Below, piece after piece: positions 12,562 through 45,574 of a stretch of DNA of 64,000 nt; the first letter of the stretch is position 1; every line of letters starts with the position of its first letter. The stretch comes from Hemiscyllium ocellatum (lineage: Eukaryota), in contig NC_083425.1 of assembly GCF_020745735.1 (NCBI RefSeq), forward strand, positions 33,033,575-33,097,574. Direction: 5' to 3'. Made by a program: the position numbers and the translations under genes. The notes beneath the pieces are model-generated. The model saw only the letters and a list, made by a program, of their open reading frames with translations. It made no database searches and was not told where the DNA came from.

Positions 12562-12594
12562 TTAATAAACATTAATCCTGTGGTCGCTTGACAC
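12562..12594 (-). CDS. Copy 1 terminal coding exon (VSSDHRINVY*)
   Basis: Acceptor tttttcctctttaaccag; about 20/33 nt identical to the copy 2 terminal exon; phase 0. Confidence 0.7.
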   Translation of the reverse strand: MSSDHRINVY

Positions 12595-15500
12595 CTGGTT
12601 AAAGAGGAAAAAAGACTTTTAAAAATTGTGAGACAAATGTCACATAGCTAAGCCTATCTCAAAGTTATTGTGCCCTTGTGTTTTTCACAGAGGGGGTAAT
12701 TGGCCACACTCTGACTAGGCTGGGTTTGAAAGGTTTTGTTGGGGCCTTTTTTGTTTACCTCTAATAGATAATGAGCCTAAGGCTTTCATGTCTTTAAAAA
12801 ATGGTATAATCAGTTAAAAATCACACAACACCAGGTTATAGTCCAACAGGTTTATTTGGAAGCATTAGCTTTCGGAATGCTGCTCCTTCATCAGGTGGTT
12901 GTGGAGTATAAGATCGTAAGACACAGAATTTATAACAGAAGTTTACAGTGTGATGTAACTGAATTAATATATTAAAAAAGACCTGGATTGTTTGTTAAGT
13001 CTCTCATCTTTTAGAATGAACATGTTGGTGTCAGTTCTTTCATACGTAAATCACAGAACTTTTTTAAAGTTACATTCCCGAGTGAACTTTAACAGTTGGT
13101 GTCATGTCGGCCCAGATAATGCATTGAAGGTGTGAGGTGCCCTGTGTGAGACTGTCTGTGCTACAATGTTCAGACTGGTTCCAATCTAAAAAACAGATTT
13201 ACAGAATCTTACAAGGACTTATCTGAGCCGACATGACGCCAAGTGTTAAATTTCACTTGAGAATGTTTCTTGAAAAATGTTCTGCAATTCACAAATGAAA
13301 GGATTGAAACCAACATGTTCATTCTAAAAGATGAGAGACTTAACAAACAATCCTGGTCATTTTCAATACATAATTTCAGTTACACCACACTGTAAAATTT
13401 TGCTATAAATTCTGTATCTTACAATCTTATACTCCACAACCACGTGATGAAGGAGTAGCGCTCCGAAAGCTAATGCTTCCAAATAAACCTGTTGGATTAA
13501 TACCTGGTGTCATGTAATTTTTAACTTTGTACATCCCAATTCAACACTGGCATCTCCAAATCACGGTATAATCAAGGGTATGTGGCCAGCTCTCTAGCTG
13601 CGCAGGTCAGTACAGTTCTGGAGTTAGTTGAGTCAGGGTCACAGTTGAAGCTGGAAGTTCTCTCCCTTCTCCTGCCCCTTCTGACTTTGTAACCTGTACG
13701 TCTTTTGTGTCATTTTAACTCTTTGTGCTAAGGGGTCTGTTCACTGGGACTGTTGGAAGTATTTTGGAACAGCATTATTAAGTTGGGATATCTGTCGGGT
13801 GTTTGGATAGGGTAAGTTGTATTTTTGGTTCTTTGTATTTCATTCTGTAACTTTGTAAATAAATTCTCTTTGTTTAAAACTTGGCAGTCAGATCAACTAA
13901 TTCACTCTGGGAACATCCCTGGATACTTACCTGAAACAGATAGCAAAGTTATGGTCTAGGCTACCTGCTTGAAAATGTTTTGAGGGGTCAGGCCTGGTCC
14001 ATGACACAAAGCTTTCAAAAACATGCAGATACTTGAAATTACACTTACCATCGGGATTTCAAATTCTCTTCTAATTTCTGAAATTAAAGCAATACAACAA
14101 TGAATTCAGTGTTTCTGGCATCTAACAGTTGATTTTAATTCACACATTCTTCTGCTAAATGTTGCAGTTTATTCATTCTTATAGCTCCAAACTCAATCTT
14201 GGAAAAGGCAGTAATCTCTGGATGATCATGACAATATTGACAGATGTAAAAGCATCACATTTACTGAACTCAATTCAGATCGTTTGTCCTGCTCCTTTGT
14301 CAAAGGGCAAAAATACTTTTGTAACCAAATTGACACAGAATAGTTGCAATCAGCCAACCTCTAAGATTTCAGTTTTCTAACTTAACTAGAAGTCTTTGGT
14401 AATTTCATGATTAAATTACCAAATTGCTAATGTTTGGACCGGTTATTCAGAAGTTCAAATAACCAAACACAGTGTGAGAATTTGATTTGACATTTTCTTG
14501 AAGGGCCTAGTATCAGCACACGTAATGAATAGGCTTCGATCATTTGAGAACATTTCACTAAATGCCTAACTTAAAAACTAATGTATTGTTGGAGAGGAAA
14601 GTTGCAGCCCTTTATAAGTATAATGCAAATAGCACACCAATTAGTTCACTCTGAATTGACCAGGATAGCTTGTTAAGTTTCTCATCTTTTAGAATGAACA
14701 TGTTGTTTTCAGTTCCTTCATTTGTGAATTGCAGAATTTTTTTAAAGAAACATTCTCAAGTGAACTTTAACACTTGGTGTCATGTCGGCCCAGATAAATC
14801 CACGTAAGATTCTGCAAATCTGTTTTTTAGATTGGAATCAGTCTGATTACAGGTATTAAACAATGATAAGAAGGTTCAGTAGCATCCCATAGTTTTTCAC
14901 TCTGGGAAATAAATGCCAGCTTTACCGGTGGTACACACAACTAAAAAGAAGAAGTGTTTACTTCCTTCTCTATTCTCCTTGCCCTGTCCAAAACGTCATA
15001 AGTTTAATATTTATATCTTGGACCCCCAAAGGATGACTGAGTCACATCTTTTCTGTGATGTTCAATGGAAATGACTGAATAGAATATCTTCACAGCAGTT
15101 CAGTCTGACTCACCAAAACATTTCTATCTCCTTTATGTGGGAGCTCAGGACAAGTTTTTAATTTATCCATCTTTTGTTTAAGCAAGGGTTGTAATTAATT
15201 AGGAAACATTCATAACTTGAGATACCTCAACATTTCTTTCTAGCAAACTATTCAGCAAATGCTTCTCCATCAGTAATTTAAAGATATTTGTTTTCCAATA
15301 TTTCAACTAAGGGATATGTAAGAAACACTGCATTAATGAGGAGGTCAGAGTGAGAGACTGAATCTGGAGTGATTCAGAATGTTTGAGATTCTGTCAATTA
15401 TTTTTATTGAATCTTGGAAATTGTATATTTGATATATAATTAAGTTAAACTGCATTGGATTCTGGATTATGAGCATATTCAAAATAAGGATAATATCAAA

Positions 15501-17710
15501 TGTTTCAAAACGTAAGACAATGTCACAATTTGTGTGATTAGCATAATTATGTAATAACCATAATGATCAAAATACCTGGATGTGATCTTCTTCTAAATTG
15601 TGGAAGAGCAGAAATTACTAATACACCATAAAAAAGGGTGATAATCAGAAAGGCTGTTATGAGCACGTTTTTATTTTTCTCTTCAATATTACTATCAGGA
15701 TTCGAGCGTTGATGAAAGACTGAAACAGACAATGTGGGTGAAAAATATAGAATTAACAGCAGAACTAAAACATGACTAAAAATTGAAGCATTTCACTTCG
15801 TACTCATTAGATCTAGAATGCAATAATCAGATTTATAAAACGAGACCCCATTTTATGCAGAGTGAGAAGAGGGTGCTTATCGTTTGGGCCTGGAGCTGCA
15901 GCATGAGCAGTTAACTGTCAATCTTAATTCTCAGACCGGCCACATAGCTTCTGTTTGGTCTGGGAATATCTGTACTGAACTATGACTTTATTCATTAACA
16001 ATAGCAAAGTTGACTCTTGCAATATTGTTCACATATTAAGAACAAATTAGATATATTAGTTCTTTAAACATCGACTTTCCAAAATTCTTTCACGAGTGAA
16101 TGTTGCGAACTTACATGGAAGGTTTTTCTGCACCACATATTGACCCTCTTCCATGCTCCACACAGCACAAATGTAAACACATTCTGGAATATCTATTTTC
16201 TCTGTGATTTGAAATGTGCTCGTGATCTTGTACAGTTCCTCTGCTGATTTTACACTGCGAGTAATAACCTTGGATGTGAGGTTCTTCATTCCATTCAACA
16301 ACCAGTGAATCTGAGCCAGAGGATATCCAATTGCTTCACAGGTGACATTTACCATTCTCGTTGATATCATGTTTGGGAATATGGTCACGTTGTATGGAGC
16401 TAAAAGGGATGATTACAATATTATTAGTGGAATGAGACTAGCTTCATAATTTGTGTTTTCTTTGAGGTGGGACTTTCCATGGACTGGAATAAGGAAGACA
16501 AAATGGTAGCATGCATGTACAGCAAGCAACTAGAATGTCAAAGGGCATTCTGGCCTTTATTGCAAGGGGATTAAAGTACCAGAATAAAGAAGTCTTGCTA
16601 CAGTTAGACAGGTGTTTGGTGCAACCACATCAAGAATCCAAATGCAGTTTTAGCCTCCACATTGAAGGAAAGACAGACTTGCACTGGTCACAGTATAGTG
16701 AAAGTTCACAACATTCAGTTATGGAATGAGATGGTTTTCATATGCTGAAAGATTGAGTGCTTTGAGTTTATATTCTCTGGGGTTTAAAAGAGTGAGAGGT
16801 GATCTCTCTGAAACATGTAAGATTCTGAAAGGGCCTTACAGGATAGCTACAGAGAAATTGATTCTGCCAGTCAGGGAATTTAAATCACAAAGGCACACTC
16901 TCAGGTAAACTGAATTAGGATTATAATTTTTCACTCACAGGTATGTAAACTTTTGTAAACCTTCCTCATCCCAGAGGGTTATGGATGCAGCATTATTGAA
17001 TACATTTAAGACTGACAGATTTTTTTTTGGGCTTAGAGCAGGAAAATGGAGCTGCAGCCCAAGATCAAACATGATCAGACTAAATGGGAGAGCATGCTTG
17101 ATGGACCATATGCTCTAATCATGCCCCTATTTCTCTTTTAAGGATGAGAACAAAACCAGAAATTGTTACCAACTACTTGCAACCAACATTCTACAATTAG
17201 AAATATCAGAAACAGAATAATCACTCACCTTTAACCTGCAATGTAATCACACTAGTGTCATGACCAACATTTGATTCCAAATGATATTGGTATGTCCCAA
17301 TATCTGACAACTGTGTGTTCTGGATTACCAGTGATACATCTTGAGATTCTGGGTGAAGTAATTTAATCCGACCCTGAATTCCATTGACACTTTTCTTGGA
17401 GGTAAACACTTCTATAATTCTATCTTCTCCCATTTTAACTAGTTCGATATGCGTCAGAGTCATATTTGATGCTGAATTGAATGTGCATGGTAGTTTAGTG
17501 TCTTTACTAAATATTCCTGTCACCGATGACTCACAATTTAATTTCAAGAAACCTGAAAAACAGCAATTTTCATTAACTCACATCAGTGCATTGAGAATGA
17601 GTGTTCAATGGAGCCAAATATTGAGGAGCACTCCAAGACTTACATTGTGCAAATGATGGAAAAGTGAATAAGATGACAGGAAAAATACTTATCATATAAT
17701 ACGAAACCAT
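12562..17710 (-). CDS. B7-family type I membrane protein, copy 1 (PD-L1/PD-L2-like; signal-IgV-IgC-TM-tail; 293 aa)
   Basis: Six coding exons join in frame with GT-AG sites: 17710-17644, 17552-17229, 16399-16115, 15719-15576, 14077-14049, 12594-12562 (882 nt). The V/C junction VK-APY and CEAIGYPLAQIHW resemble PD-L1 CQAEGYPKAEVIW and PD-L2 CQATGYPLAEVSW. Orthology not tested. Confidence 0.85.
12638..14006. mobile_element. Solo LTR in the last intron of copy 1
   Basis: Termini tgtca...tgaca with 4-bp TSD caaa at 12634-12637 and 14007-14010; internal aataaa; absent from the very short equivalent intron of copy 2. Confidence 0.72.
12813..13564. mobile_element. Fold-back PLE family B element nested in the solo LTR
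   Basis: About 300-bp inverted arms (approx. 12813-13116 and 13218-13530); 10-bp TSD ggtataatca at 12803-12812 and 13565-13574; hammerhead motifs at 12866-12894 (-, core intact) and 13444-13472 (+, C3 mutated to G). Confidence 0.8.
14049..14077 (-). CDS. Copy 1 cytoplasmic mini-exon, 29 nt (EIRREFEIPM)
   Basis: tttcag/AAATTAGAAGAGAATTTGAAATCCCGATG/gtaagt; same length and splice sites as copy 2. Confidence 0.8.
14668..14848. mobile_element. PLE family B internal fragment
   Basis: Reverse complement of about 13170-13345; absent from the homologous copy 2 intron near 42090-42140. Confidence 0.7.
15576..15719 (-). CDS. Copy 1 stalk/transmembrane exon
   Basis: FHQRSNPDSNIEEKNKN-VLITAFLIITLFYGVLVISAL-PQFRRRSHP; gtttcag acceptor, CAG/gtattt donor; 144 nt, phase 1-1. 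Confidence 0.85.
16115..16399 (-). CDS. Copy 1 IgC exon
   Basis: APYNVTIF..VNVTCEAIGYPLAQIHW..YKITSTFQI..ECVYICAVW; ttttag acceptor, gtaagt donor; 285 nt. Confidence 0.9.
16490..17130 (+). mobile_element. Old CR1 3' fragment in the IgV-IgC intron, shared with copy 2 (about 44300-44990)
   Basis: Degraded RVRGDLSETCKIL-type remnants at homologous positions in both copies, so it predates the duplication. Confidence 0.7.
17229..17552 (-). CDS. Copy 1 IgV exon (non-canonical)
   Basis: FLKLNCESSVTG..LPCTF..IELVK..QGRIKLL..SLVIQNTQLSDIGTYQYHL..ITLQVK; tttttcag acceptor, AAG/gtgagt donor; 324 nt. Confidence 0.9.
17644..17710 (-). CDS. Copy 1 signal-peptide exon (MVSYYMISIFPVILFTFPSFAQ)
   Basis: ATG at 17710; exon starts at 17727 after aaatag; gtaagt donor; conserved with copy 2. 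Confidence 0.85.
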
Positions 17711-19097
17711 TTCCAGACCCAGTTCACCTATTTGGGAATAATACAGAAAACATATTAAGTTTCACCAATTTTATCAAACCTGGTTTCACTTTTTTATGGA
17801 TCAAACATTTATCATCAATAAAATATTGCTCTAAAAAGAATCTGTCAGGTATATTTCCACTGCTAGATATGATTTGAATGCTTGTAATTATTACATGTTA
17901 GTGTAAAACATACACACATTTTGTGGTGGATGGCTACCATTCTCACAGTGAGGATTCTGGGATGTATGTCCAACAAAGGACACTGCAATAATACTAAGGC
18001 TGCAATCTTGACAGGCTGGGCTGTGTTTGACTGGATTGCAAATCTTCACATGTGCTGAGTGACATTTTAAGTCCACAGTGGGTGTCTTGTTTCCAGGACC
18101 AACTCCCACTCCTTTAGTAGCCCCTGTTTAACAGATTTGGCCTTAGATTGGGCAGGGTCTTGACAAGGCTGCAGCAGTGACTCAGAGCCTGGGGTTGTTC
18201 TATTCTGGACCTGAGGATGGTCTGATCCTGGATTGGATATCCTGCCTCCATATCCTGTGCTGGGATGTCCAAATCCAAATAACCATCAATCATTGTGCAA
18301 GCCCTGACATGTAGACTCCAAATTTGATGATTCCCACAGCTGTTGCTGTAGTATCAGTGAAGAATAAATGAAAACCCTGAGTCCATCACAACTGAACTGA
18401 TATTGCAATTCTGGGGAAATCAACTCCAGACTGCCCTGCTCTTTCTATTACTCATTAACTTTCAAAATTAAAAAAAATGAGGAATCAGGAAGGCCAAAGC
18501 ATTTGCAATTTAATTTTGAATTGAATGGTGTTTGAATAGTTCCAGGCAGTTATATCGGCTGCTGGAGGTTAATGTTTGAGATTTTAATTTGGAGATGTCT
18601 CCAGTGTCAGGGTGATGGGCACAGTCAGTGATGGAGGTTTGGGTTTTGCAAACTCCATCTGTAAGAAATGACCTCATCCTGCAGAGTCAAGTCAGTTTCT
18701 GGAGGTATGAAGTATTATGCCAGACTCTGTGTATCTCTCTCCAGATGCTGCCAGATCTCCTGAGTTTCTCTCACATTCTCAGTGTTTGGTTTTGGGGTTT
18801 GGTGCATACCTAAAAGCAGAGAGAGCTCACCACTACACAGAGAGAGAAGAAACTGTGTCACGAATCTATTAGCCTCTCCACTATAAAGTATTCATTCAAA
18901 TTTTGAAGGCATTTTGAAACATGAAAGACAGCATACCTGATGGGAAACACTGGGCATAGTTTAAAAGCAGCAGCACAGTGAAACCAAAGGCACAGAGCAT
19001 CAGAGAGACATCGTATGACTTTGGGAAATACAACAGCAATTTAATACTGAGCCCACAGGAACATCACCTGAAGAGACCTCAGGATTCAAGCAGAGAC

Positions 19098-19411
19098 ATG
19101 GTGGCATGGTGGCAGAGTCATTAGCACTGCTGCCTTGCAGCACCAGAGACCCAGGTTCAATTCCAGCCTCAGGTGACTCTCTGTTTGGAGTTTGCACATT
19201 CTCCCCGTGTCTGCATAGATTTCCTCTGGGTGCTCTGGTTTCCTCCCACAATCCAAACATGTGCAGGTTAGGTGAATTGGCCATGCTAAATTGCCTGTAG
19301 TGTGAGATGAAGGGGTAAATGTAGGGGAATGGGTGTGGGTGGGTTGTCCTTCGGCGGGCCAGTGTGGACTTGTTGGGCCGAAGGGCCTGTTTCCACACTG
19401 TAAGTAATCTA
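19098..19411 (+). mobile_element. HE1-type V-SINE
   Basis: Same family as 1769-2085, opposite orientation, taagtaatcta tail. Confidence 0.85.
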
Positions 19412-19619
19412 AGAGGAAGTAGCAAAGTTGGTGAGTACGCCTGGGTTAATAATATAATCATATTCATAATATTTTTATCCCTTATTGTTTGTATGATCTT
19501 TAGGTTCTTTATTTTGGTCTTATCATTTTAAAGGGCAATAATGTGCAGGTTCAGATAAAAAAAAGCACCTCTGCCTATATAATATTATTTGATTTCAGGG
19601 CAAGCTGAGGGTCTCATTG

Positions 19620-21320
19620 AAAGGAGTGTGTCAGAGCAGCAGTGCTCATGATTGTGATGTGTTCCTCCTGCTCTGTGAGAAGGCGGGCACAGTTTGATGT
19701 GGGCAGCAAGTATTTTCATCTGTAGCTCCTGGAAGCCTGGGTTTCAGGCCTTCAGCAGCAGCTGGGAATACTGTGGTACTGATGCCAGGCTGAGAGTGTC
19801 ATGGAGACCATGTATAGACAGCTGGTTATGCTGCAGGCCCAGATCTACATCAAGGGAGGGAATGGGTGGTCACCAGACAGAGCAATAGGCAGGCAGTGCA
19901 GGAAGCCCCTATGCTATTCCCCTGCCAAACAAACATGCCAGTTTGGATACTGTTGAGGTTATGGTCTCCCAGAGCAAAGTCGCAGCAGCAAAACTTATTG
20001 CACCACTGTTGGCTCTGCTGCATGGGAAAGGGGGAGGAAGTGTGGGAAGGCTATAAAGAGTTCAGTTCTAAGGCGAACAGATAGATGTTTCGGTGGCCAC
20101 TAGCAAAATTTCAAATGATATGTTACATCATCCTGGCTGCTGGGGTCAAGAACATCTTGGAGTGGCTACAGGTCATTCCGGTGGGAGGCTGAACAGACAG
20201 TGGTCGCACTGGTACCAATAACCTAGGTCCTAAAATCAGAACGCAGGATTTATAAAGCAAGTTAAAAAGTAGGAAATCAAAGTAGTGAAATCAGGATTGC
20301 TCTCAGTACCATGTGCTCATCAGGATAGAAATAGCAGGATATATCAGATAAATATGTAGCTGGAGAGATGGTGCAAAGGGGAGATGGCTTGGATATTGGG
20401 ATTGATTCTGGGGAAGGTGGAACTGGGATGCACTTGAGCAAGATTGGAACTGACTCCAAGGGGAGTATTTTTGAGTGCAGTTGAGGAAGAGTTTAAACTA
20501 AAATAGCAGGGAAATGGGAACCTATGCATGGAGTCAGGCAAAGACTAAAAACATAATGGAAAATAAGAAAATTGATCGCAGAGAATTCAAGCTGCAGTGT
20601 TAAATAATGTGAATACAACTAAAAATATTATGAAGACAAGGTTTGAGGCCTTGTGCCCTAATGCTTGAAGCATTTGCCATAAAGTGCATAAATCAATTGT
20701 GCAAATAGACATAAATGGTTATGATTTAATTGGGATTACATTGATATGGCTGCAGGGTGACCAATAAGGAAAACTGAACATCCAGGGGTATTTCAATTTT
20801 AGGAAGGACAAAGAGAAAAAGAAGGTGGGGTAGCATTGCTAGTTAACAAGTGAATAACAAAATAGTGAGGAAGGATATTAGCTCTGTTAAATTGGTACAA
20901 TTAACAATAAAGGTATGGCTGTAATAATGAGCAACTTTACATATAGATTAGGTAAATCAAATCAGTAACAATGCAATAGAGGAGAATATGGAACACTGAG
21001 CGAGATTGTTTGTTGAGGAACCAACTAGGGGATAGACCATTCTATGTTGGGTGCTGTGTAATGAGAAGGGACTAATTGGTATTCCTGCTACATGTGAGGT
21101 CCCTTAAGGAAGAGTGACCATAATATAATAGAATTCTCCATTAAGGTGGGGAGTGACACAATTGATTCTGAGATCCAGGCCCTGAATGTCCACAGGGGAA
21201 AGTATAATTGTATGATGTACAAGTTGTCATGGGTAAATTGGGGTAAACAACTGAGAGGGATGACAGTGGAAAGGCAATGGCAAACATTTAAAGAGTGTGT
21301 GGATGAACTGCAACTGTGAT
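19620..21320 (+). mobile_element. Highly degraded CR1 (ORF1 esterase and APE endonuclease region)
   Basis: Recognisable similarity to the 5' half of the CR1 copies at 24.4 kb and 55.6 kb, with many stops. Confidence 0.7.
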
Positions 21321-21324: not shown

Positions 21325-23450
21325 TCCAGTCAAAAAGTGTTGTGCGAGAAAAGCACAGCAAGTCAGGCAGCATTCGAGGAGCAGGAGCGTCGACGTTTCG
21401 GGCATAAGCCCTTCATCGAGAATGTGGGGACAAAAAGGGCTGAGAGATATGTAGGAAGGTGGGGTGGGGCTGGGGGGCGGGGGAAAGTAGCTGGGAAGGT
21501 GATTGTTAAATGCAGGTGAATGGTGATTGTGATAGGTTGGTGGTTAGGGTGGACAGATAGGTGGGAAGGAAGGTGGACAGATAGGACAGTTCAATAATGT
21601 GGTGCTGAGTTGGAAGGTTGAATCTAGAATGAGGTGGGGGGAAATGGAGGAGGGGAGATGTTAGTGTTGATGTCGTATGGTTGGAGGGTCCTAGGTGGAA
21701 GATGAGGCATTCTTCCTCCAGTTGTTGGGTGGATTAGATTTGGCAGTGAAGGAGGCCCAGGACTTGCACATCCTTGGTGGAGTGGGAGGGGGAATTGAAG
21801 TGGTCGGCCACAGAGAGTTGTTTGGTGCATGTGTCTCAGAGATGTTCTCTGAAATGCTCTGCATATTGGCGTTGTGTCCCCTCGATATACAGAAGACCAC
21901 ACTGAGAACACCGGATGCAGTAAATGAGGTGGGTGGATGTGCAGAAAATTTCTGCTGGATGTGGAAGGATCATTTGGGGCCTTGGATGAAGGTGAGGGGG
22001 AGGTGTGGGTGCAGGTTTTACATCTCTTGTGGTGGCAAGCGAAGGTGCTGGGTATGGAGGGTGGGTTGTTGGAAGGTGTGGACCTAACAAGGGAGTTATG
22101 GAGGGAATGGTCTCTGAGGAATGCAGATAGGGATAGGGAAGGAAATATGTCTCTGGAGGTGGGGTCTGATTGTAGGTGGCACAAACGGCGGAGGATAATG
22201 CGCGATATCTGGAAATTAGTCAGGTGGAAGGTGAGAACTGAGGGCAGGGGGGTTCTATCCTTATTGCAGTTGGAGGGGTGGGGGTTCAAGAGCAGAGATG
22301 CGGGGAGTGGAGGAAATGAGGTGGAAGGCACTGCCAATCACGTATGGGGGGATATTGCGGTCCTTGAAACAGGAGGCCTCCTTGGGTGTCCTCGAATGGA
22401 TTTGCTCCTCCAGATACGGTGGAGGTGGAGGAATCGGGAGTAAGGGATCACGTTTTTACAGGAGATGGGGTGGGAGGGGTAGAGTCCAGGTAGCAGTAGG
22501 AGTCGGTGGGTTTGAAATAGATGTCTGTGTTGAGTCAGTCGCTGGAGAAGGAGACGGAGAGGTCCAGGAAGGGGAGGGACGTGTCAGAGATGGTCCAGGT
22601 GAACTTAAGGTCAGGGTGGAAGGTGTTTGTGAAGTTGAGGCGCTTTTCAACTTACTAGTGGGAGCATGAGGTGGCATCAATACAGCCATCAACGAGGTGG
22701 AGAAAGAAGTGGGAGATGATGCTCGTGAAGCTGCAGATGATGAACTGTTCCACATATCTGATGAAAAGGCAGGCAGAGCTGTGGCCCTTGCAGGTGCTAA
22801 AGGCTACTCCTTTGGTCCAAAGGAAGTGGGAGGATCCGAAGGAGAAGTTGCTGAGGTGTGAACCAGTTCTGCCAATCGAATGAGCGTGTTGATGAAGGGG
22901 TACTGGTTGAGTTGTCGGGAGAGGAAGAAACAGAGGGCGTGGAGGCCTTTGCCATAATGGTTGGATGTGTACAGGGACTGGATGTCCATGGTGAAGATGA
23001 AGCATTGGGGGCTGGGGAAACAAATGGCATAGAGGAGGTAAATGGCATGTGGGTGGTATCCCGAATGTATGGTGTCAAGGTATGAGGAGATACGTTCAGT
23101 GAGGCAGGAGCAGGGGGAGACAATGGATCATCTGGGGCTGTCAGGTTTGTGGATTTTGGGTAAGAGGTAGAACCGGGTGCTGCAGGGATCAGGACAATGA
23201 AGTTGGAGGCTGTGGGTGGGAGATCCCCAGAGGTGATGAGGTTGTGGATGGTCTGAGAGATGATGGTTTGGTGATAGGAGGTGAGGTCGTGGTCGAGAGG
23301 GCAGTAGGAGAAGGTGTCCATGAGTTGGTGCCTGGCTTCAGTGGTGTAAGAGGTCAGTGTGCCAAACTATCACTGTGCCCCCCTTGACATCTGGTTTGAT
23401 GGTGAGGTTGAGGTTGGAGCGAAGGGAGTGGAGGGGGGAGTGGAGGGCTA
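21325..23450 (-). mobile_element. Penelope-like element family A, longer copy with RT and GIY-YIG remnants
   Basis: MDIQSLYTS..GLHALCFFL, LPFLDTS-like segment, IYCIRCSQCGLLYIEGTQRQYAEHFREHL; terminal hammerhead at 21392-21420 has a damaged core. Confidence 0.85.
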
Positions 23451-23461
23451 TGCTTTGCAAT

Positions 23462-23865
23462 AGGGACCAGGTTCAAATCTTGCCATGGCCAAAGAAGGAC
23501 TTTCAATTTACTAAAAATCTGGAATGAAGAATCTACTGATGACCATGAAACCATTGATGACTGTCAGAAAAAAAAACAACCTGGCTCACTGATGTCCTTC
23601 AGGGAAATCTGTCATCCTTACCTGGTCTGGCTTACATGTGACTCCAGATACACAGCAATGTGTTTGACTGTCAACTGTCCTCTGAAATGGCTGAGCAAGC
23701 TACTCAGTTGTACCAATTGCTATGAAGTCTCAGCAAAGAGATGACATGGACTGGAGATGTTCAAAATGGCAGCTCACCACCACCTTCTCGAGGGCAACAA
23801 GGGATGGAAAATAAATGCTGGCAGCCAGTGATTCCCACATCTCCAAGCGAATAATAAATAAAAAT
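23462..23865 (+). mobile_element. Deu-domain SINE (SacSINE1/AmnSINE1-like)
   Basis: ctggctcactgatgtccttcagggaaatctgtcatccttacctggtctggcttacatgtgactccaga matches the Deu domain as I recall it; CR1-like 3' tail gcagctcaccaccaccttctc...aataaataaaaa, also seen at 51.3 kb. Confidence 0.7.
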
Positions 23866-24061
23866 GCCTCGGGTGAGGGGATGAGACTATGAAGGAGAGT
23901 CCTTCATAATAACCTCAGCCAGTGTGGGAATGGAACCGTAACATTGGCTTTAACTGCATCACAAATTCACCAACTAGGCAAAGCGAGCAACATTATACCC
24001 ACAGTCCACACACTTTCAACACAGCTCTCAGCAAAAATATTTCCTGAATGTCAGACTGTAC

Positions 24062-24438
24062 CTTTGTCCCAGATAATACGTGGAGTCCAGCACTAAATCA
24101 GGTCAAAGCTGATCACAGAAGAGTCAGCAATTATAATCGGGATTCGACACAGGATCAGCTCAGCTGAGCCCGGGACGTGCTTTAGGATCTGCGGGGAGCG
24201 AGTGCAGCTCAGAGCTCAATCCAGTGCCCAGTCTGGGAAAGATCCCGGCTCCTGGTGTCCAGTGTTAGAGCAAACAAGGAGCCAAAGTCACGTTAAGCCA
24301 TTTTTCTACACACTGCTGTTGTTCAAAAAGAACTGCACAAGCAGCCGGTACTCCCTGTTTCTTTTTCCTTGCCTTTGAATTTTTAGTTTCGATTTACTAT
24401 AACTGAATATTTGTTGTTGACGAGCGGACGAAAATAAA
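24062..24438 (-). promoter_or_regulatory. Candidate promoter/non-coding first exon of copy 1
   Basis: Non-repetitive and locally CpG-rich (about 13 CpG in 300 bp); possible donor AAG/gtacag at 24062; ISRE-like agtttcgattta at 24385-24396. Inference only. Confidence 0.3.
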
Positions 24439-27400
24439 ATATTTCTGAGCAACTTCCTGACTTGCACCAGCAACCCTGCTCAGCTTATACAGTGAATGGA
24501 AATGAGATGAGAAATAGAGGATTGCTGCCTGTTTATGTGCAAATAATAAAATCCCGAGAATTAAATCTGTGGTACAGTTTTTACGTCTTAGAAACACAAC
24601 CTTTTTTTCCATAGAGCGAGGTGTAAATGCTTCTGGAGATCGCGAGGCAAAGTATAAACCGAATGCTGACAAACGATGGCAGTGGAATGTTCCTCCTGCA
24701 GGATGTTGGAGGTAGGGGTGAACACCAAAGCTCCTGCCGACTTCACCTGCAGGAAGTGCAGCCAGCTCCAGCTCCTCACAGACCGCGTTAGGGAACTGGA
24801 GCTGGAGTTGGATGAACTGAGAATTATTTGAGAGGGTGATAGATAGAAGCTCCAGGGACATAGTTACGCCAGGGAACAGAGGTAGCTGGGTGACAGTTAG
24901 AGGTGGGAAGGGGAGGAAGCAGGCAGTGCAGGGATCCCCTGTGGTCGTTCCCCTCAACAATAAGTATACCGCTTTGGATACTGTTGGGGGGGAACGGCCT
25001 AGCAGGGGTAAGCTGCAATGACTGGGTCTCTGGCACGAGGTCCGGCTCTGAGGCCCAGAAAGGAAAGGGGGAGAGGTGGAGAGCGCTAGTTATAGGCGAC
25101 TCTATAGTTAGAGGGACAGACAAGCGGTTCTGTGGACATGGGCGAGACTCTCGGATGGTTTGTTGCCTCCCGGGTGCCAGGGTCCGAGATGTCTCAGACC
25201 GTGTCTTCAGAATCCTTAAGAGGAAGAGTGTGCAGCCAGAAGTCGTGTTGCACATTGGCACCAATGACATAGGTAGGAAGAGGGGTGGGGAGGTCATTCA
25301 GGAGCTCAGGGAGTTAGGCTGGAAGCTAAAAGCTAGGACGGACAGAGTCGTCATCTCTGGGTTGTTGCCGGTGCCATGTGACAGTGAGGCAAGGAATAGG
25401 GAGAGAGTGCAGTTGAACATGTGGCTGCAAGGATGGTGTAGGAGGGAGGGCTTCAGGTATTTGGACAATAATACGGCATTCTGGGGAAGGTGGGACTTGT
25501 ACGAAGCAGGACGGGTTGCACCTGAACCAGAAGGGCACCAATATCCTGGGGGGTAGGTTTGCTAGCACTCTTCGGGGGGGGGGGGCGGGGGGGTTTAAAC
25601 TAATTTGGCAGGGGGATGGGATCCGGACTTGTAGTCCAGCAAGTAGGTTAGCTGTTTTTCAGGATGTCCAAGAATGTAGGGAGGCTGTGGAGAAGGTAAC
25701 ACTGACAGGGAATACTTGCAGACAGAGAGATGGGTTCAAGTGTGGATACTTCAATTCAAGGAGTATCAGAAATAAGGTGGGTGAACTTAAGGCATGGATC
25801 GGTACCTGGGACTACGATGTTTTGTGGCCATCACAGAAACGTGGATAGAAGAGGGACAGGAATGGTTGTTGGAGGTTCCTGGTTACAGATGTTTCAGTAA
25901 AATTAGGGGGGGTGGGTAAAAAAGGAGGGGGTTTGGCGTTGTTAATTAGAAATGGTATAATGGCTGCAGAAAGGCAGTTCGAGGGGGATCTGCCTTTGGA
26001 GGTAGTATGTGCTGAAGTCAGAAATAGGAAAGGAGCAGTCACCTTGTTGGGTGTTTACTATAGGCTCCCCGATAGAAGCAGAGATGTGGAGAAACAGATT
26101 GGGAAACAGATTTTGGAAAGGTGCAGAAGCCACAGGGTAGTAGTCATGGGCGATTTCAACTTCCCAAATATTGATTGGAAGCTATTTACATCAAGTAGAT
26201 CGGACGGGGCGGTGTTTGTGCAGTGTGTCCAGGAAGCTTTTCTAACTCAGTATGTAGATTGTCCGACCAGAGGGGAAGCCATATTGGATTTGGTACTTGG
26301 TAACGAACCAGGACAAGCGATGGGCTTGTTAGTGGGTGAGCATTTTGGTGATGGTGACCACAATTCTGTGACTTTCACCTTGGTTATGGAGGGAGATAGG
26401 TGCGTGCAACAGGGCAGGTTTTACAATTGGGGGAAGAGTAAATATGATGCTGCAAGACAGGATCTGAGGAGCATAAATTGGGAGCATAGGCTGTCAGGGA
26501 AGGATGTCGTTGAAATGTGGAACTTTTTCAAGGAACAGATATGACGTGTCCTTGATATGTATGTACCTGTCAGGCAGGAAAGATATGGTCGTGTGAGGGA
26601 ACCTTGGTTGACGAGGGAGGTTGAATGTCTTGTAAGGAGGAAGAAGGAGGCTTACATAAGGTTGAGGAAACAAGGGTGGGTCTGTAAATTTGCAGACGAT
26701 ACAAAGATTGGTGGAGTTGTGGATAGTGAGGAGGGCTGTTGTCAGCTGCAAAGGGACTTAGTTATGATGCAGAGCTGGGCTGAGGAGTGGCAGATGGAGT
26801 TCAACCCTGTCAAGTATGAGGTTGTCCATTTTGGAAGGACAAATAAGAATGCGGAATGCAGAGTTAACGGTACGGTTCTTAGTAAGGCGGAGGAGCAGAG
26901 GGATCTTGGGGTCTATGTTCATAGATCTTTGAAAGTTGCCACTCAAGTGAATAGAGCTTGTAAGAAGGCCTATGGAGTATTAGCGTTCATAAGCAGAGGG
27001 ATTGAATTCAAGAGTTGTGAGGTGATGTTGCAGCTGTATAGGACTTTGGTAAGGCCACATTTGGAGTACTGTGTGCAGTTCTGGTCGCCTCATTTTAGGA
27101 AAAATGTGGAACCTTTGGAGAGGGTGCAGAGGAGATTTACCAGGATGTTGTCTGGAATGGAGAATAGGTCGTATGAGGATAGGTTGAGAGTGCTAGGCGT
27201 TTTCTCATTGGAATGGCGAAGGATGAGGGGTGACTTGATAGAGGTTTGTAAGATGATCAGGGGAAGAGATAGAGTGGACAGTCAGAGACTTTTCCCTGGG
27301 TACAACAGAGTGTTACAAGGGGACATAAATTTAAGGTGAAGGGTGAAAGGTATAGGGATGATGTCAGGGGTAGGTTCTTTACCCAGAGAGTGGTGGGGGC

Positions 27401-27570
27401 ATGGAATGCGCTGCCTGTGGGAGTGGCAGAGACAGAATCATTGGTGACCTTAAAGTGGCAATTGGATAGGTACATGGATAGGTGCTTAAGCTAGGACAAA
27501 TGTTCGGCACAACATCGTGGACCGAAGGGCCTGTTCTCTGCTGTATTGTTCTATGTTCTATGTTCTATGA
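24439..27570 (+). mobile_element. CR1 LINE with ORF1 (zinc-finger plus SGNH esterase), APE and an internally deleted RT
   Basis: [54 protein letters not shown]; (ttctatg)n tail; jumps from ...RLRKQG to WVCKFADDT near 26673. Confidence 0.92.
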
Positions 27571-39300: not shown

Positions 39301-40190
39301 TCGATGGCCTCCTTTTTAAATTCTTGCCTAACTTTCTATATTCTCCCTTCAGAATCTCATCCTTTTCCATTCCTATATCATTAGTTCCAATGACGTCCTA
39401 CTGGGCCCTCTCCCCCTTGAGAAGATTCTGCACCCTCTCCAAGATATCCTTGATCTGAGCACCAGGGAGGCAACACACCATTCTTAATTTTCACAATTGG
39501 CTGCAGAAATAACTGTCTATGCTTCTGATTAGAGAGTCCCCTCTCACAAACAATCACTTGAAACCCGATGTACCCCTCATTACATTAGAGCCTGTCTTGA
39601 TTACAGGAACTTGACTGTTTGTGGTACATTCTCCTGAGAGTCTTTCACCCCCGACATTTTCTAAAACAGCATACTTGTTTGAAATGAGGATAGCCACAGG
39701 AGACTCCTGCACTAATTGTCTACTCCTCCTACCTTTCCTGGAGTTAACCCATCTATCTGACTGTACATTTTTTTTCTCCCTCTCTATAACTGCCATCTAT
39801 GACACCCTCAGCTCCTGTAAATTCTTTATTGCCTCTAACTGCTGCTCCATGCAATGTGATAGGATTCTCAACCAAAGACACTTCCTGCAGACATAACCAT
39901 CAATAACATGGAAACTCTCACTAAACTCCTGCAACCAAACGGAAGAGCACATTACTCCACTAAAGGCCATCTTTACACCCTAACAATCCAGAGATCCAGA
40001 AAATACCACCATCTTATTGCTCTAAAAGAAATACTGTTTCAGGCTAACTTAATACTTGTGGCTTATATTTTTAAATTTTAATCAAGAGACAGAGCTCAAT
40101 AAAACATATAATCAAGAAAATCACTGTGGTAGATTTATAGCAAGGCTACACATAAAAACTATGCACTTATCTGTTCCTGTGCTGTGAGCT
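36380..40190 (-). mobile_element. Near full-length degraded CR1 LINE
   Basis: Minus-strand fragments [82 protein letters not shown]. Confidence 0.9.
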
Positions 40191-41389
40191 CTCCCACACA
40201 GGTTCCTCCAAGGTCATCTGTGAATTCTGCGATTTGTCAATGTTTCCTAGATGCACTCTGATGTCCAGAGATACTTGAACTCAAACGGCAAAGGCAGTAA
40301 CTGTGCAAATTCACTGCTGTGTCTGACGGTAGTATTGGGTTCTTTCTCTGGCCATGTGGTTGCTGCCTTTGTCTGTCTTAAAGGAAATGGTTGTGGCAAG
40401 ATGATCTTGATGTAGAGATGACCATCTTCCCTGATCCTAGCACTCAATTCACCACATTGATTACAGCCTGATAAGATTTCACCTGTTCATTATTAAACTT
40501 CATGAGATCTACATTTTAAAAATATTTTCAGTTAGCATGAAACTAATCAATTAATACTTTACAAAATGTATTTATGTGTTATTCAGCTACATCAGATTTA
40601 GACTAAAGCTGTACATATATTCACTTCTGTCAAGTAATAGTTGGCAAAAGTAATGCAATATGTTGGAGAACAATATACATCAACCTGTTCTACATTAGAT
40701 TGATTTAAAGTAATCAGTGTACAAACATAATGATCAGTGTTTACAATTCAGAAAATACTGAAATCTCAGTTTTCCAAATTAATTGCCTGCAGCTACAATT
40801 TCTCTTAACCTAGTTGAAAAATGCATTCAACAGTCAAAGCCATTCACAGTATTTCTGTGATCAAATCACAAATATATGTTTACAAATACATTTCTGTGAT
40901 CAAACCATAAATATATATATACATCTGTATTTAAAAAAATGGAGCTGAAGATATTTTCTTTCAGCACACTGAAATTGATCCAATATTTGCATCAGCTGTC
41001 AAATAGCCATCTTCTTGATAAAAGGCAGCCCAGATTGAAAGCCAAGTACTTTAGCATGTAGCTTTTGTATACCAGTGCTGCGTTTGACCGATGGTGTTCA
41101 CAGACAACTAATGTGAAGCATTGTTTCTTTACAGAGAAAAAAATTAGTGAAGAGTTCAGCTCCATCAGGTGTATTATCCAGGATGAGAACTGCATTCAAA
41201 ACTGCTGCTTCCAGCTGATCATAATACAGGAAGGGACAGTTTGTGAAATAACTGATGAGGTTTACATTCATCTTCCATCATTCACATATGATAAGATGTG
41301 ATTAATATTTCATATCACATTTTCTTAAAGTTGTCACCATCAGTAGACTTGTTGCAGGTAGAAATAAGAATTAGCCACCACAGCTACTA

Positions 41390-41419
41390 TTAGACATCAG
41401 TCATCTCATCAATTGTAAT
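41390..41419 (-). CDS. Copy 2 terminal coding exon (ITIDEMTDV*)
   Basis: Strong acceptor ttttcttcttttaacag; TAA at 41392-41390. Confidence 0.75.
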   Translation of the reverse strand: MTIDEMTDV

Positions 41420-44400
41420 CTGTTAAAAGAAGAAAATATCATTTATAAAAATTGTGATAGAAGACTATCAAAAATGTGCAGATATTTGTAAACACACTTA
41501 CCATTGGATTTTGAGATTCTCTTCTAATTTCTGAAAGTAAAGTAATCCAACAATTAATACATTGTTTCTGGCATATAACATAAACTGCTGCAAACATTTG
41601 CAGTTCATTAATTCTTTTGGTTTCAAACTCAATCATAGAAAAGGCAGTAATCTCTGGATGATCATGATAATATTGTCTGGTATGAAAAATTCACAATTTA
41701 CCAAATTAATATTTGTTTAATTTGCCCTGCTCCTTTATCTAATGATAAAAATAATTTTATAACTAAATGGATCCAAAATAATTGCAACCTATAAAGTTTC
41801 AGTCCTCTGACTTAACTAGGAGGCTACAGTATCATAATAACTGGCCAGCAATTTGGAAGTTATCCATTCTTTATCACAATGTGAGAATTTGATGTTAGAT
41901 TTTGCTTTAAAGAGACTAGTATCAATATAGGTAATTGAGAGGCTTCAGTTATTTTTTTAGGTCTGAAGGGCCTGTACTGCACTGTAATGTTCTTTGTTCT
42001 ATTATTCTAAATGCCCAATTTGGAAACTAATGGATTCCTGGGAAAGGAAGTTACAGTCCTATATGCAATTCAAGTAGCGCATCGATGTAGTTCACTCTGA
42101 TTTCCCCTCTGAGTCAGCTTAGCAACCCAGTCATAGGTATTAAACTGCAATTAGCAAGGCTCAACAGCATCTCATAGCAACTCACTCTGGGGAATAAATG
42201 CCAGATTTTCCAGTGGCACACACAAGACATTTTTGTTTGAAAATGCTTACTTCCTTCTATTCTTTCCTTGCCCTAATCAAAACATCTCAAGTTTGAAATT
42301 TAGTCATCTTCGATATTCCAAGATACAAGTCACACATCTTTTTCTGTGATTTTCAATGAATAGAGCTCAACAGGTTGTTTTCCACAGTGGTCAGTTTGAG
42401 TCACCTAAACATGCTTGCATCTTAGAGTCTTCTTTGTGGGAGCTCAGGAGGAGTCAATGTGTGGCTTATTCATCATTTATATATTACCTATTCTTTCCTT
42501 CATCAAAGATTGTAACTCATTAGGCAACATTCAGAGTTGGAGTTACCTCTACATTTCAAACTATTCGGTAAAATTATTCAGCAAATATTTCCTCATCAGT
42601 GACATGAGGATATTTGCTTTCCAGTAATTCAGCCAAGTGCTTATGTAAATCATTCAGTATTAGCAAGGGAATTAGAAAGCTGGACAGAATTTAAAACTAT
42701 TTAGAATGTTAGAGATTCCATTACTTCTTTTTTTTAGGCCTTGAATCATGAATAGTTGGTACGTAATGGGGTCAAAGTGTATTGGTTCCCTGATTATAAG
42801 CGTATTTGAAAGAAGGGATGATGAAAAGTGTTGAAAAAAAATAATTATGTCATACATTATATAATAATCATGAGTTTTGAAAGTAGCCAGAATCTAAAAC
42901 CATCTTACTTGGATATGATCTTCTCTTAAATTGCAGAACAGCAACGATTACTAATGCAACAAAAAGCAGTGCCATAATCAGAAAGACAACTACATTTTTC
43001 CTTTCCTCTCCATTATTGTCAGTAAAGGGAAGGTTTTCATGACAGACTGCAACAGAAAACATGGGGAAGAATTAACTAATTAGTTAAATCCTCCATACTT
43101 CAGAACTTAAAAATTACTAAAATGAGACTAAAAGTTGAAGCTTTTCATCTTGTACCCATTAGAACTAGGATGCAATAAAAAGACCTGTAAAATGAGACTA
43201 TGTTTTATATAGAATGAAAAGCCAGAGCTGATTGATAGGATCATAATTGCCCTGGAGACGCAGCATGAACAACTAATGGTCACTCTTAATTCTCAGATCA
43301 GCCACATAGATTCTGATTGGTCTGTGAACAACCCTACCCCCAATTATGACTTTGTTAATTAACAATGGCAAAGTTGACCTTTAAACAACACTGATGACAA
43401 TGACTGCAATCATTTAAAAATAATGTTCCCACAAAATTTTCAGTTTAAAATAGTCAGGTATATTAAATATGACTCTTGAGAATAAATGAAACATATTAAT
43501 TCTTTCTACGTCTACTTTTCAATCTCCTTTCAAGAATAAATGTGGTGAACTAACTTGAAATATTTTCCTGGTCTGCATATACACTGTCTTCCACATTCCA
43601 TATGGCGCAAGTATAAACGCATTCTGACACTTCTGTTTCTGCTGTGAGTTGAAGAGTACTGGTGATTTTGTACAGTCCCTGTGGTGTTTCTTCACTACTA
43701 GTGTTAGCCTGGGATGTGAGGTTCTTTGTTCCATTGAAGAACCAGTGCATCTGAGCCTGTGGATATCCAATTGCTTCACAAATGATACTTCCTCTTCTTG
43801 ATGATGAGACCATGGTCACGTTGTATGGAGCTAAAAATGATGATTGCATTATTATTAGTGGAATGAGATTTGCTTCATACTTCAGAGTTAGAAACTGAAT
43901 TTAAGTTTTACCAGTTGTCAGAGTGAGATCTTCACTTGAAATTACTGAGGTTAGCCTTGGAATTCTCACCCAATGAGCATGATGTAGAGGAGCCAGCGTT
44001 GGACTGGGATGGACAAAGTTAAAAATCACACAACACCAGGTTATATCCAACAGGTTTATTTGGAAGCACTAGCTTTTGGAGTGCTGATTCTTCATGGGTA
44101 GCTACAGGGGCAGGATCATGGAATGCAAACAAATCTGTTAGACTGTAACCTGGAGTTGTGTGATTTTTAACTTTGTCCAACACTGGCTCCTCTACATCAT
44201 GCTTATTGGGTGAGAATTCCAAGAGGAATAAACATGACCATTACGCCACTATCACCATTGGTTTAGCCAGCCATTTTCAGGCACAGTTTAGCAGCAAAAT
44301 GATGTTGTTGAAAGGGTGATTATCATTCATTCCCGGGCTGAAGGGCTTATTTTATGAAGCAAGTTTAAACTGGATAAACCTAAGTCCATTGCTGTTTAGA

Positions 44401-45574
44401 AAAGTGAGAGGTGACCCTGTTGAAATTACTTTTGGTTAGGTTTGGGATATGTTGAATTTTTTGAAGTGTTTCTCACCATGAGACCTAATGGGTTTTCTTG
44501 TAGTACCTTAGTAAACTCATCTTATTCAATAGGTATCCTGCTTTTGTGGCATCACAAACATTTGTTTCCTGTCCCCACTGTAAAATACACTTTCCTGTCC
44601 TATGATGGGAAATTGCCTGAATTGAGCTAACATTACATTAACGGGGTTTAGGAGAGTGAGAGGTGATCTCATTGAAACATAGAAGATTCTGAAAGGACTT
44701 CACAAGATAGCTGTAGGGAGATTGTTTCTGCCAATCAGGGGACCTAAAACACAGAGATACAGTGTCAGAGAAACTAATTTAGGGTTGTCCCGAGGAGAAA
44801 TTACTTTATTCACAGGGTTGTAAACTTTGTAAGACTTTCCCAAAGGGTAGTGGCTGCTTCACTGTTGAATACATTTAAGACTGACAGATTTTTGGGGAGC
44901 AAGCAGGGAAGCGGAGCTGCAGCCCAGGAACAAGCACCATTGTGCAGAATAGTGGAGCAGGCTTAATGCCTAAATCATTTATTCCTGCCCCAATTCACTT
45001 TTAACATGAGATCAAAACTGGAATAAGTTACAAAATACTTGCAACCAACTTTCTATAGTGAGAACTATTGGGAAAAGAATACAGTCACCTACCTTTTACC
45101 TTCAATTCAAATTGAGAAATTTTGTGACTAACTGATGTCAGCAAATTATATTGATATTTCCCACTATCAGACACCTGTGTGTTCTGGATCATCAGTAACA
45201 TGTTTTGAGATCCTGGATGAAGTAATTTAATCCGACCTTGTACTTCATTGGCACCTTCTTTGAAGTTAAAAATTTCTACATTTCCATCTTTTTCCATTTT
45301 ATAAAGTACAATCTCTGTCAATGTCCACTCCTTTTCTGAATTTGCTGTGCACTGTATTTTAGTGTCTTCATTAAATGTTCCTGTCACTGAAGACTCACAA
45401 CTTAATTTCAAGAAACCTGAAAAACAATAATTTTGATTCACTCACATGCCTTCAGTGAGAATAAGTGTTCAATAGAGCTATATGTTGAAAATCATCTTAA
45501 TACTTACTGTCTGCAAATGATGGGATGATGCAGAAGATGACAGGAAAGAGTCTTATTGTATGGTATGAAACCAT
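41390..45574 (-). CDS. B7-family type I membrane protein, copy 2 (PD-L1/PD-L2-like; 287 aa)
   Basis: Six coding exons join in frame with GT-AG sites: 45574-45508, 45416-45093, 43830-43555, 43046-42909, 41530-41502, 41419-41390 (864 nt); same phases as copy 1; CEAIGYPQAQMHW. Confidence 0.87.
41502..41530 (-). CDS. Copy 2 cytoplasmic mini-exon, 29 nt (KIRRESQNPM)
   Basis: tttcag/AAATTAGAAGAGAATCTCAAAATCCAATG/gtaagt. Confidence 0.8.
42909..43046 (-). CDS. Copy 2 stalk/transmembrane exon
   Basis: CHENLPFTDNNGEERKN-VVVFLIMALLFVALVIVAVL-QFKRRSYP; ttgcag acceptor, gtaaga donor; 138 nt. Confidence 0.87.
43555..43830 (-). CDS. Copy 2 IgC exon
   Basis: APYNVTMV..IICEAIGYPQAQMHW..YKITSTLQL..ECVYTCAIW; 276 nt; gttagt donor. 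Confidence 0.9.
43957..44223. mobile_element. Small PLE-B fold-back insertion flanked by an inverted duplication of about 45 bp
   Basis: cttggaattctcacccaatgagcatgatgtagaggagccagcgttgg and its reverse complement enclose two inverted PLE-B ends; hammerhead decayed. Confidence 0.72.
45093..45416 (-). CDS. Copy 2 IgV exon (non-canonical)
   Basis: FLKLSCESSVTG..IQCTA..IVLYK..QGRIKLL..LLMIQNTQVSDSGKYQYNL..FELKVK; 324 nt; AAG/gtaggt donor. Confidence 0.9.
45508..45574 (-). CDS. Copy 2 signal-peptide exon (MVSYHTIRLFPVIFCIIPSFAD)
   Basis: ATG at 45574; exon starts at 45591 after aagtag; gtaagt donor. Confidence 0.85.

Follow-up and report, generated by a model that had tools for sequence, protein, structure and literature searches.

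The disulfide bond between strands B and F, packed on the tryptophan of strand C, is the textbook signature of an immunoglobulin (Ig) domain, and it is by this signature that annotation pipelines and immunologists spot B7 ligands. A 64,000-nucleotide (nt) stretch of the genome of the shark Hemiscyllium ocellatum (contig NC_083425.1, positions 33,033,575 to 33,097,574; hereafter the window) holds two genes, here called A and B, that encode B7-family proteins whose Ig constant (IgC) domain bears this signature and whose Ig variable (IgV) domain does not. Which B7 proteins are these, and what would hold together a V domain that has lost its usual bond? The best explanation overall, and one that we hold to be fairly probable, is that they belong to an old and uncharacterised branch of the B7 family with a V core rewired around a bond between strands A and B, and that they act as ligands of Ig-superfamily (IgSF) receptors on lymphocytes.

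Two tandem genes with a rewired IgV core

By a six-frame motif search of the window, genes A and B were found as a tandem pair on the minus strand, with the motif copies approximately 27.9 kb apart. Three motifs in each IgV domain mark the strands concerned:

17541-17527 (gene A) and 45405-45391 (gene B), minus strand: A-strand motif, LNCES and LSCES, respectively
17448-17434 (gene A) and 45312-45298 (gene B), minus strand: C-strand motif, IELVK and IVLYK, respectively
17304-17284 (gene A) and 45168-45148 (gene B), minus strand: F-strand motif, D-x-G-x-Y-Q-Y in both

Gene A has Cys29 on strand A (codon 17535-17533), Cys45 on strand B (17487-17485), Leu60 at the position of the Trp (17442-17440) and Tyr112 at that of the F-strand Cys (17286-17284). 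The residues of gene B carry the same numbers, i.e., Cys29 (45399-45397), Cys45 (45351-45349), Leu60 (45306-45304) and Tyr112 (45150-45148), and the two Cys are 16 residues apart in both precursors. The original prediction, made from the letters of the sequence, had listed these motifs, the kept B-strand Cys, a TAT tyrosine codon on strand F and a new Cys 16 residues ahead of the B-strand one, all of which were found in both copies. Its limits for the pair were exact, position 12562 being the last base of the gene A stop codon and 45574 the A of the gene B ATG, and the 43% amino-acid divergence that it gave agrees with the 57-59% identity of the V exons (52% for the whole proteins).

AlphaFold returned confident V-set folds for both genes, with predicted local distance difference test scores (pLDDT) of 94.2 for the gene B ectodomain and 92.2 for the gene A V domain. 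In the gene B model, numbered along residues 23-222 of the RefSeq protein P0078, Cys7 ends strand A (3-7) and Cys23 lies in the middle of strand B (19-27), while Leu38 belongs to strand C (33-42) and Tyr90 to strand F (86-94). The model of the gene A V exon, with strands at residues 2-6, 9-12, 18-26, 32-40 and 85-93, agrees with this placement of the two Cys, the Leu and the Tyr.

Gene structure

Each gene was rebuilt as six coding exons with GT-AG introns, spanning 12562-17710 of the minus strand in gene A (293 amino acids) and 41390-45574 of the minus strand in gene B (287 amino acids). The exons measure 67, 324, 285/276, 144/138, 29 and 33/30 nt (A/B where the two differ), with a separate exon each for the signal peptide, the IgV domain, the IgC domain, the transmembrane (TM) segment and the short tail. 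Phase 1 is used at the joins between domain exons and phase 0 at the end of the 29-nt micro-exon. As predicted, frames, splice sites and phases are intact: all 20 splice sites are preserved and neither reading frame is broken. The exons are as follows:

17644-17710, minus strand: gene A ATG exon (signal peptide), donor GT, phase 1; 96% identity to Chiloscyllium P0081
17229-17552, minus strand: gene A IgV exon; Pfam V-set, 9.6e-12; AlphaFold pLDDT 92.2
16115-16399, minus strand: gene A IgC exon; Pfam Ig_3 and C2-set_2 'CD80-like'; Cys151-Cys208 and Trp163 canonical, with an extra Cys204
15576-15719, minus strand: gene A stalk and TM exon, 144 nt, a multiple of 3; 82% identity in tblastn with P0081
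14049-14077, minus strand: gene A cytoplasmic micro-exon EIRREFEIPM, 29 nt; homologous to 41502-41530 of gene B and to the RRxSxxPM of other members
12562-12594, minus strand: gene A last exon VSSDHRINVY and stop; matches the C-terminus of Chiloscyllium P0081
45508-45574, minus strand: gene B ATG exon (signal peptide); 100% match to P0078; split codon AGT (Ser23)
45093-45416, minus strand: gene B IgV exon; Pfam V-set, 2.9e-8; AlphaFold of P0078:23-222 with pLDDT 94.2 and predicted template modelling score (pTM) 0.84
43555-43830, minus strand: gene B IgC exon, donor GTTAGT; Pfam Ig_3/CD80-like C2-set
42909-43046, minus strand: gene B stalk and TM exon, 138 nt, a multiple of 3; absent from RefSeq isoform X2
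41502-41530, minus strand: gene B micro-exon KIRRESQNPM, 29 nt
41390-41419, minus strand: gene B last exon ITIDEMTDV and stop; 100% match to P0078

The last exon of gene A was placed with the C-terminus of the Chiloscyllium orthologue P0081, and its polypyrimidine and acceptor region is homologous to the counterpart at the last exon of gene B. The codon split between exons 1 and 2 of gene A is TGT (Cys23). This Cys is common to bamboo shark and whale shark paralogues and is replaced by Ser in gene B. An 'EC' four residues ahead of the IgC F-strand Cys (16178-16190 and 43617-43629) was seen only in A, B and their bamboo-shark orthologues, and a stalk Cys (ICHEN) in gene B and its orthologue.

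Letter for letter, the gene B product is the H. ocellatum RefSeq protein 'programmed cell death 1 ligand 1-like isoform X2' (P0078), which runs from ...ENIS straight into KIRRES..., the 138-nt TM exon being skipped in frame. Isoform X2 is presumably a secreted form that lacks the TM segment, and gene A, the TM exon of which (144 nt) is also a multiple of three, could skip it likewise. In both genes a conserved AG acceptor lies 17 nt ahead of the ATG and opens the ATG exon, and at least one 5' non-coding exon is therefore expected. An open reading frame (ORF) at 19645-19719 (MKILAAHIKLCPPSH...) has 92% identity to the N-terminal extension of the bamboo-shark RefSeq model P0081; in this shark it is not followed by a GT donor, the surrounding DNA is repeat-like, and it is probably an alternative or a spurious 5' exon. 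Intron 5 measures 1454 nt in gene A (12595-14048) versus 82 nt in gene B, the former being enlarged by inserted repeats that include inverted copies at 12812-12891 and 13447-13563. This intron 5 repeat recurs in the V-C intron of gene B (43980-44179).

Cysteine and tryptophan states across the family

Relatives were collected by phmmer with V exon A over 1.8 billion proteins, followed by name look-ups. The pattern of genes A and B is present in all 16 tabulated elasmobranch rows, from at least ten species (11 with Rhinoraja), and two further ray rows, truncated or V-only, carry the same V pattern. In an alignment of 15 elasmobranch ectodomains, C7, C23 and L38 are invariant and Y90 nearly so, being Phe in Hypanus. 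The hallmark of the branch as a whole is a further Cys that closes strand A and precedes the B-strand Cys by 15-16 residues: neither C6 nor C22 varies in an alignment of 42 V domains that spans sharks and teleosts. A census of 210 V domains aligned to the family profile gave the following states:

149 domains: A Cys, B Cys, Trp and F Cys all present
45 domains: rewired, i.e., neither Trp nor F Cys; A and B Cys kept in 45/45
2 domains: Trp kept, F Cys lost (both in P0058)
1 domain: Trp lost, F Cys kept (P0185)
6 domains: A Cys missing, B and F Cys retained (from four genes, i.e., P0202, P0209, P0114 and one of tilapia)
1 domain: A and B Cys both lost (P0158, the sole B Cys loss among approximately 205 domains)
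0 domains: A and F Cys without B Cys, or B Cys alone

In the rewired domains, which come from elasmobranchs, coelacanth and ostariophysans, the F position holds Tyr, Phe or Trp and the C position Leu, Ile or Val. Loss of the Trp and loss of the F Cys are not strictly coupled, P0058 and P0185 being the exceptions. Throughout the census the B Cys is accompanied by the A Cys or the F Cys, as is expected if it needs one partner and either of the two will do. The pattern is not a chance feature of two genes, recurring as it does in every tabulated elasmobranch row and in the 45 rewired domains.

A proposed bond between strands A and B in place of the B-F bond

We propose that the B-strand Cys acts as a hub that would require one partner. 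In the rewired members it would bond across the A-B strand pair rather than across the sandwich to strand F, and the new aromatic residue on strand F would fill the space of the lost Trp, such that the V-set fold is kept. The exchange of large for small residues (Cys to Tyr on strand F, Trp to Leu on strand C) looks like compensatory repacking. In the usual V-set register, strand A runs antiparallel to the second half of strand B, and in antibody VH domains the buried residue 6, which sits 16 residues before Cys22, adjoins Cys22. The alternating hydrophobic residues of the shark domains (L3, L5, C7 versus I21, C23, A25) turn both Cys to the core on neighbouring strands. Judged from strand register and hydrophobic periodicity, an A-B cross-strand disulfide would be reasonable in its geometry, and such a bond in place of the B-F one is plausible on the models.

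The alternative that survives best is a V domain with no internal disulfide, in which the A Cys would be free or engaged in an interchain bond (a covalent dimer) and the B Cys would be a buried free thiol. There are precedents: the CD2/SLAM and CEACAM families dropped the B-F bond, both canonical Cys having drifted away, and in the N domains of CD2, CD58, SLAM and CEACAM the V fold survives without it. The A Cys is also conserved in the 149 members that have a canonical B-F pair, which implies some other role for it. Moreover, the Cys counts of the ectodomains are even only with lineage-specific extras, which are Cys23 and Cys204 for gene A and Cys201 and Cys224 for gene B. Set against this, none of the 45 rewired domains, be they from sharks, rays, coelacanth or ostariophysans, has lost either the A or the B Cys; P0158, the only protein to lose the B Cys, lost the A Cys too; and the periodicity described above places both side chains towards the core on adjacent strands. 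CD2 and CEACAM lost both Cys, whereas the shark family keeps the B Cys, evolutionarily paired with the one on strand A. We therefore rate a domain without an internal bond as possible, but a good deal less likely than a rewired one.

Non-canonical bonding has other parallels among Ig domains, i.e., the intrasheet bond of Siglec V-sets and the triads of neighbouring Cys that exchange partners in titin Ig domains. The likeness of these, and of the CD2 and CEACAM V-sets, to the shark proteins lies in the bonding, with no sequence kinship. To our knowledge no A-B cross-strand bond is known in a B7 V domain, and none was found described in our literature searches. These searches, the coverage of which did not extend to Flajnik 2012 and Quiniou 2024 (Immunogenetics), returned no account of the rewiring of this family's V domain. 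This B7 branch, kept for more than 400 million years, has replaced its core in a fixed and probably repeated way, with a confident V-set fold in the models, and offers a natural experiment in the re-bonding of a protein core.

Membership of the B7 family

Genes A and B encode B7-family proteins. Pfam assigns a V-set exon followed by an Ig_3/CD80-like C2-set exon to both, and a profile of 15 elasmobranch ectodomains searched against PDB sequences gave these matches:

CD276 (mouse, 4i0k): 78.8 bits, 3.9e-21
PD-L1: 74 bits, 1.2e-19
PD-L2: 63.5 bits
BTN1A1: 63.4 bits
CD80: 52 bits
CD86: 44.5 bits

By Foldseek with the AlphaFold model of the gene B ectodomain, PD-L1 came top (3.5e-13, TM-score 0.76), the other matches being B7-H6 (TM-score 0.81), PD-L2, BTN3A1 and B7-H3; PD-L1, B7-H6, PD-L2 and BTN3A1 have TM-scores of 0.7-0.8. 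A structure search with the V domain gave generic V-set matches (B7-H6, VSIG4, nectins, B7-H3; Z 13-15) and no single nearest family, and a feature search of the ESM Atlas gave generic IgSF clusters only. The top genuine PDB sequence matches of the gene A IgC exon were PD-L1 (5e-6) and PD-L2 (1e-4); polyubiquitin matches of the C exon were rejected as summed-repeat artefacts.

The shark genes resemble B7-H3, PD-L1 and PD-L2 in their layout (leader, IgV, IgC, TM and short tail, with an exon per domain and phase-1 junctions), in the V-C linker 'APY' and in the canonical Cys-Trp-Cys of the IgC domain. They differ from all three in an IgV domain with a Cys on strand A but neither a Cys on strand F nor a Trp on strand C, and in the RRxSxxPM motif of the cytoplasmic micro-exon, which is particular to this shark and fish family. 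The original prediction of B7/PD-L-like genes thus stands as far as the B7 family is concerned, by Pfam, profile and Foldseek alike; the PD-L lineage is unlikely, the canonical elasmobranch PD-L1 being a separate gene.

Could genes A and B represent B7-H3 (CD276) in elasmobranchs, as orthologues or co-orthologues whose V domain is derived? CD276 is the top profile match, the linker 'APYSLP' is similar to the 'APYSKP' of B7-H3 in the profile alignment, and several members are labelled CD276 by RefSeq and by a flounder submitter. However, the margin over PD-L1 is less than 5 bits, and by fold PD-L1 and B7-H6 rank above B7-H3. RefSeq names the family inconsistently (PD-L1/2-like, CD276, butyrophilin, CD80, hemicentin), no human or mouse orthologue is reported to be readily predictable for the zebrafish member (PMC7720500), and B7-H3 has no A-strand Cys in the aligned region. 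We regard an origin as CD276 as rather unlikely.

Descent from the PD-L1/PD-L2 lineage, the alternative raised in the original prediction and carried in the RefSeq name, is less likely still. In its favour are the IgC exon and Foldseek matches given above, and gene A retains equivalents of PD-L1 F19 and D122, residues highlighted in PMC12151841. Gene B, however, has Lys in place of D122, and the V exon searched alone matches neither PD-L1 nor PD-L2 in PDB up to E = 10. The duplication into PD-L1 and PD-L2 is found only in tetrapods (PMC12151841). Kondo et al. 2025 (PMC12151841, supplement) list PD-L1 of catshark, nurse shark and skate, and in these published proteins the B Cys, the F Cys and the C-strand Trp are all present and strand A bears no Cys. 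Importantly, Scyliorhinus canicula has both this canonical PD-L1 and a member of the present family, P0085; PD-L1 and the rewired family are therefore paralogous, and orthology of genes A and B to PD-L1 was rejected.

Teleost CD80/86 is likewise a B7 ligand of the V-C type on antigen-presenting cells, with membrane and soluble forms (PMC9127221). The ends of flounder CD80/86 (MT019837), as given by the cloning primers, run from MASSSTI... to ...VDDFNAP, from which the flounder family member P0219 differs; no protein of the family set matches these termini. Identity with teleost CD80/86 was rejected on this flounder comparison, by which it is a different gene.

Distribution and evolution of the branch

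The closest orthologues are P0081 of Chiloscyllium plagiosum for gene A (93% identity) and the bamboo-shark protein P0004 for gene B (86%). Further elasmobranch relatives are found in Rhincodon, Stegostoma, Carcharodon, Heterodontus, two Scyliorhinus species, Mustelus, Hypanus and Rhinoraja, and a single chromosome often carries several of them. The names assigned by annotation vary without pattern between PD-L1-like, PD-L2-like, CD276, hemicentin-2-like and uncharacterised. Such misleading RefSeq names, to which butyrophilin and CD80 also belong, could corrupt comparative studies of checkpoint molecules.

Outside the elasmobranchs, the top matches over the full V domain are eels (Anguilla, Synaphobranchus), characiforms (Hoplias, Astyanax), milkfish, catfishes, bichir and coelacanth. 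The teleost orthology group is called 'zgc:174863' in RefSeq and has hundreds of percomorph members. The suggestion of a shark-specific system is consequently not borne out, given that a family with the A-strand Cys extends to coelacanth, bichir and teleosts. The zgc:174863 proteins share with the shark genes the V-C-TM layout, the tail motif and an A Cys that precedes the B Cys by 15-16 residues, and the ostariophysan members share the replacement of Trp by Leu, Ile or Val together with that of the F Cys by Tyr. They differ in being only 20-27% identical to the shark proteins and in having 'GGYP' rather than 'GYP' in the C domain, and in most of the teleost proteins (eels, acanthomorphs) the canonical Trp and Cys persist beside the extra Cys. 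The tail motif RRxSxxPM, followed by S-D, lies on a 29-nt micro-exon in sharks and teleosts alike. It reads RRESQNPM in gene B and RREFEIPM, followed by VSSDHR, in gene A (Ser to Phe), the equivalents being RRPSTRPMLSDHH in Chanos and RRHSTAPLMSDHQ in sea bass.

At the milkfish locus the sole neighbour is a weak match to a JUPITER domain. Two teleost models, P0001 (Anguilla, 1147 amino acids) and P0002 (Hoplias, 916 amino acids), string together five to seven family V domains, some with C domain and TM segment. These are probably tandem arrays fused by annotation, which would point to tandem amplification in teleosts too.

In the tree, elasmobranchs and coelacanth separate from actinopterygians (support 97/90). 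Within the latter, the Ostariophysi group together (100/96), and the fork that they share with bichir, eel and acanthomorphs is not resolved. The rewired state is found in all elasmobranchs, coelacanth and Ostariophysi including Chanos, and the canonical one in bichir, eels and acanthomorphs. Mapped on the tree, the rewired state takes two changes when the two trait columns are dropped and one when they are kept, and by an approximately unbiased (AU) test one clade comprising every rewired sequence was not rejected (p = 0.216). On these sequences, repeated and independent loss of the core, two or three times, is likely. An ancient paralogy with reciprocal loss may be the alternative; independent losses are simpler because no species was seen with both types.

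Constraint, expression and function

Over 287 codons, the ratio of non-synonymous to synonymous substitution rates (dN/dS) between genes A and B is 0.605 (Fisher p = 0.0026); for the C exon alone it is 0.58, which is not significant. Run X1, from the same species and RNA only by guess, holds 0.26 of the sampled words over 15500-17800, a stretch of which exon-internal 31-mers form no more than 0.31. Over 42880-45600, in gene B, X1 holds 0.38 and X14 0.27 of the words, as compared with at least 0.95 in DNA runs. Both genes are probably expressed. The original prediction that the altered core is not a product of decay was well founded, in view of a dN/dS of approximately 0.6, intact frames, orthologue identities of 93% and 86%, the RefSeq model and RNA-like contigs that cover the genes. 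That these are decaying or non-functional duplicates, with Cys and Trp lost under relaxed constraint, is hardly credible: a dN/dS of 0.6 is fairly high, single domains are not significantly below 1 and the genes are set amid many retrotransposons, but both frames and every splice site are intact, orthologues and paralogues from ten or more elasmobranch species have these substitutions fixed, dN/dS over the whole gene falls below 1 (p = 0.0026), AlphaFold gives confident folds and the match to a RefSeq model is exact.

With regard to function, the proteins would be cell-surface ligands on myeloid or antigen-presenting cells for a lymphocyte IgSF receptor, with an optional secreted form. In zebrafish, zgc:174863 shows enrichment in microglia and macrophages (PMC7720500). 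No mammalian orthologue of the branch is recognised; as an orphan, it stands beside orphan CD28-family receptors of fish as a candidate for the missing ligand. These receptors, CD28HL1-3 and CD28X, were reportedly described in 2024. A bolder and decidedly tentative version of our reading is that this orphan B7 branch is about as old as the jawed vertebrates and carries a three-Cys cluster on strands A, B and F with the B Cys as hub; the stabilising bond would have moved from B-F to A-B, so that the F Cys and the Trp could be lost together two or three times (in elasmobranchs, coelacanth and ostariophysans), and the proteins would be ligands of CD28HL1-3 or CD28X.

Several points weigh against the reading of genes A and B as rewired members of an old, separate B7 branch with a receptor on lymphocytes. 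Similarity does not settle the subfamily within B7, B7-H3 and PD-L1 scoring alike, and the tree, of 40 sequences, was built without an outgroup of named B7 genes. The A-B bond is argued from conservation, strand assignment and general Ig geometry, and in the 149 three-Cys members either pair could be the bonded one. For the V exon alone, dN/dS is 0.64 and not significantly below 1 (p = 0.12). That the X1 and X14 runs, in which the exons are present, are RNA is no more than a guess, and the receptor, the shark cell type and the function are inferred by analogy with other B7 proteins.

Upstream block and surroundings

Upstream of the two ATGs, sliding identity picked out one further feature common to the two genes:

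17875-18373 (gene A) versus approximately 45733-46231 (gene B), minus strand: conserved upstream block of approximately 500 bp, 86-98% identity

ORF matches in all frames of this block are 91-96%; for comparison, the exons of A and B are 66-84% and their introns 60-75% identical. The block is a candidate for a shared promoter, a first non-coding exon or a gene-conversion tract.

Besides genes A and B, no host gene lies in the window, and hence none of the PD-L1 neighbours JAK2, PLGRKT and RIC1. An Rfam scan of the whole window at gathering thresholds gave no match, and the remaining larger ORFs are derived from retrotransposons:

21600-27500, 50171-51202 and 55800-59700: degraded copies of a non-long-terminal-repeat retrotransposon (CR1-like long interspersed nuclear element), with reverse transcriptase, AP endonuclease and GDSL-esterase ORF1
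3500-4500, 8400-9400 and 63490-64000: repeated ORFs with a GIY-YIG nuclease match, which suggests a Penelope-like element

All three CR1-like regions show a strong positive GC skew.

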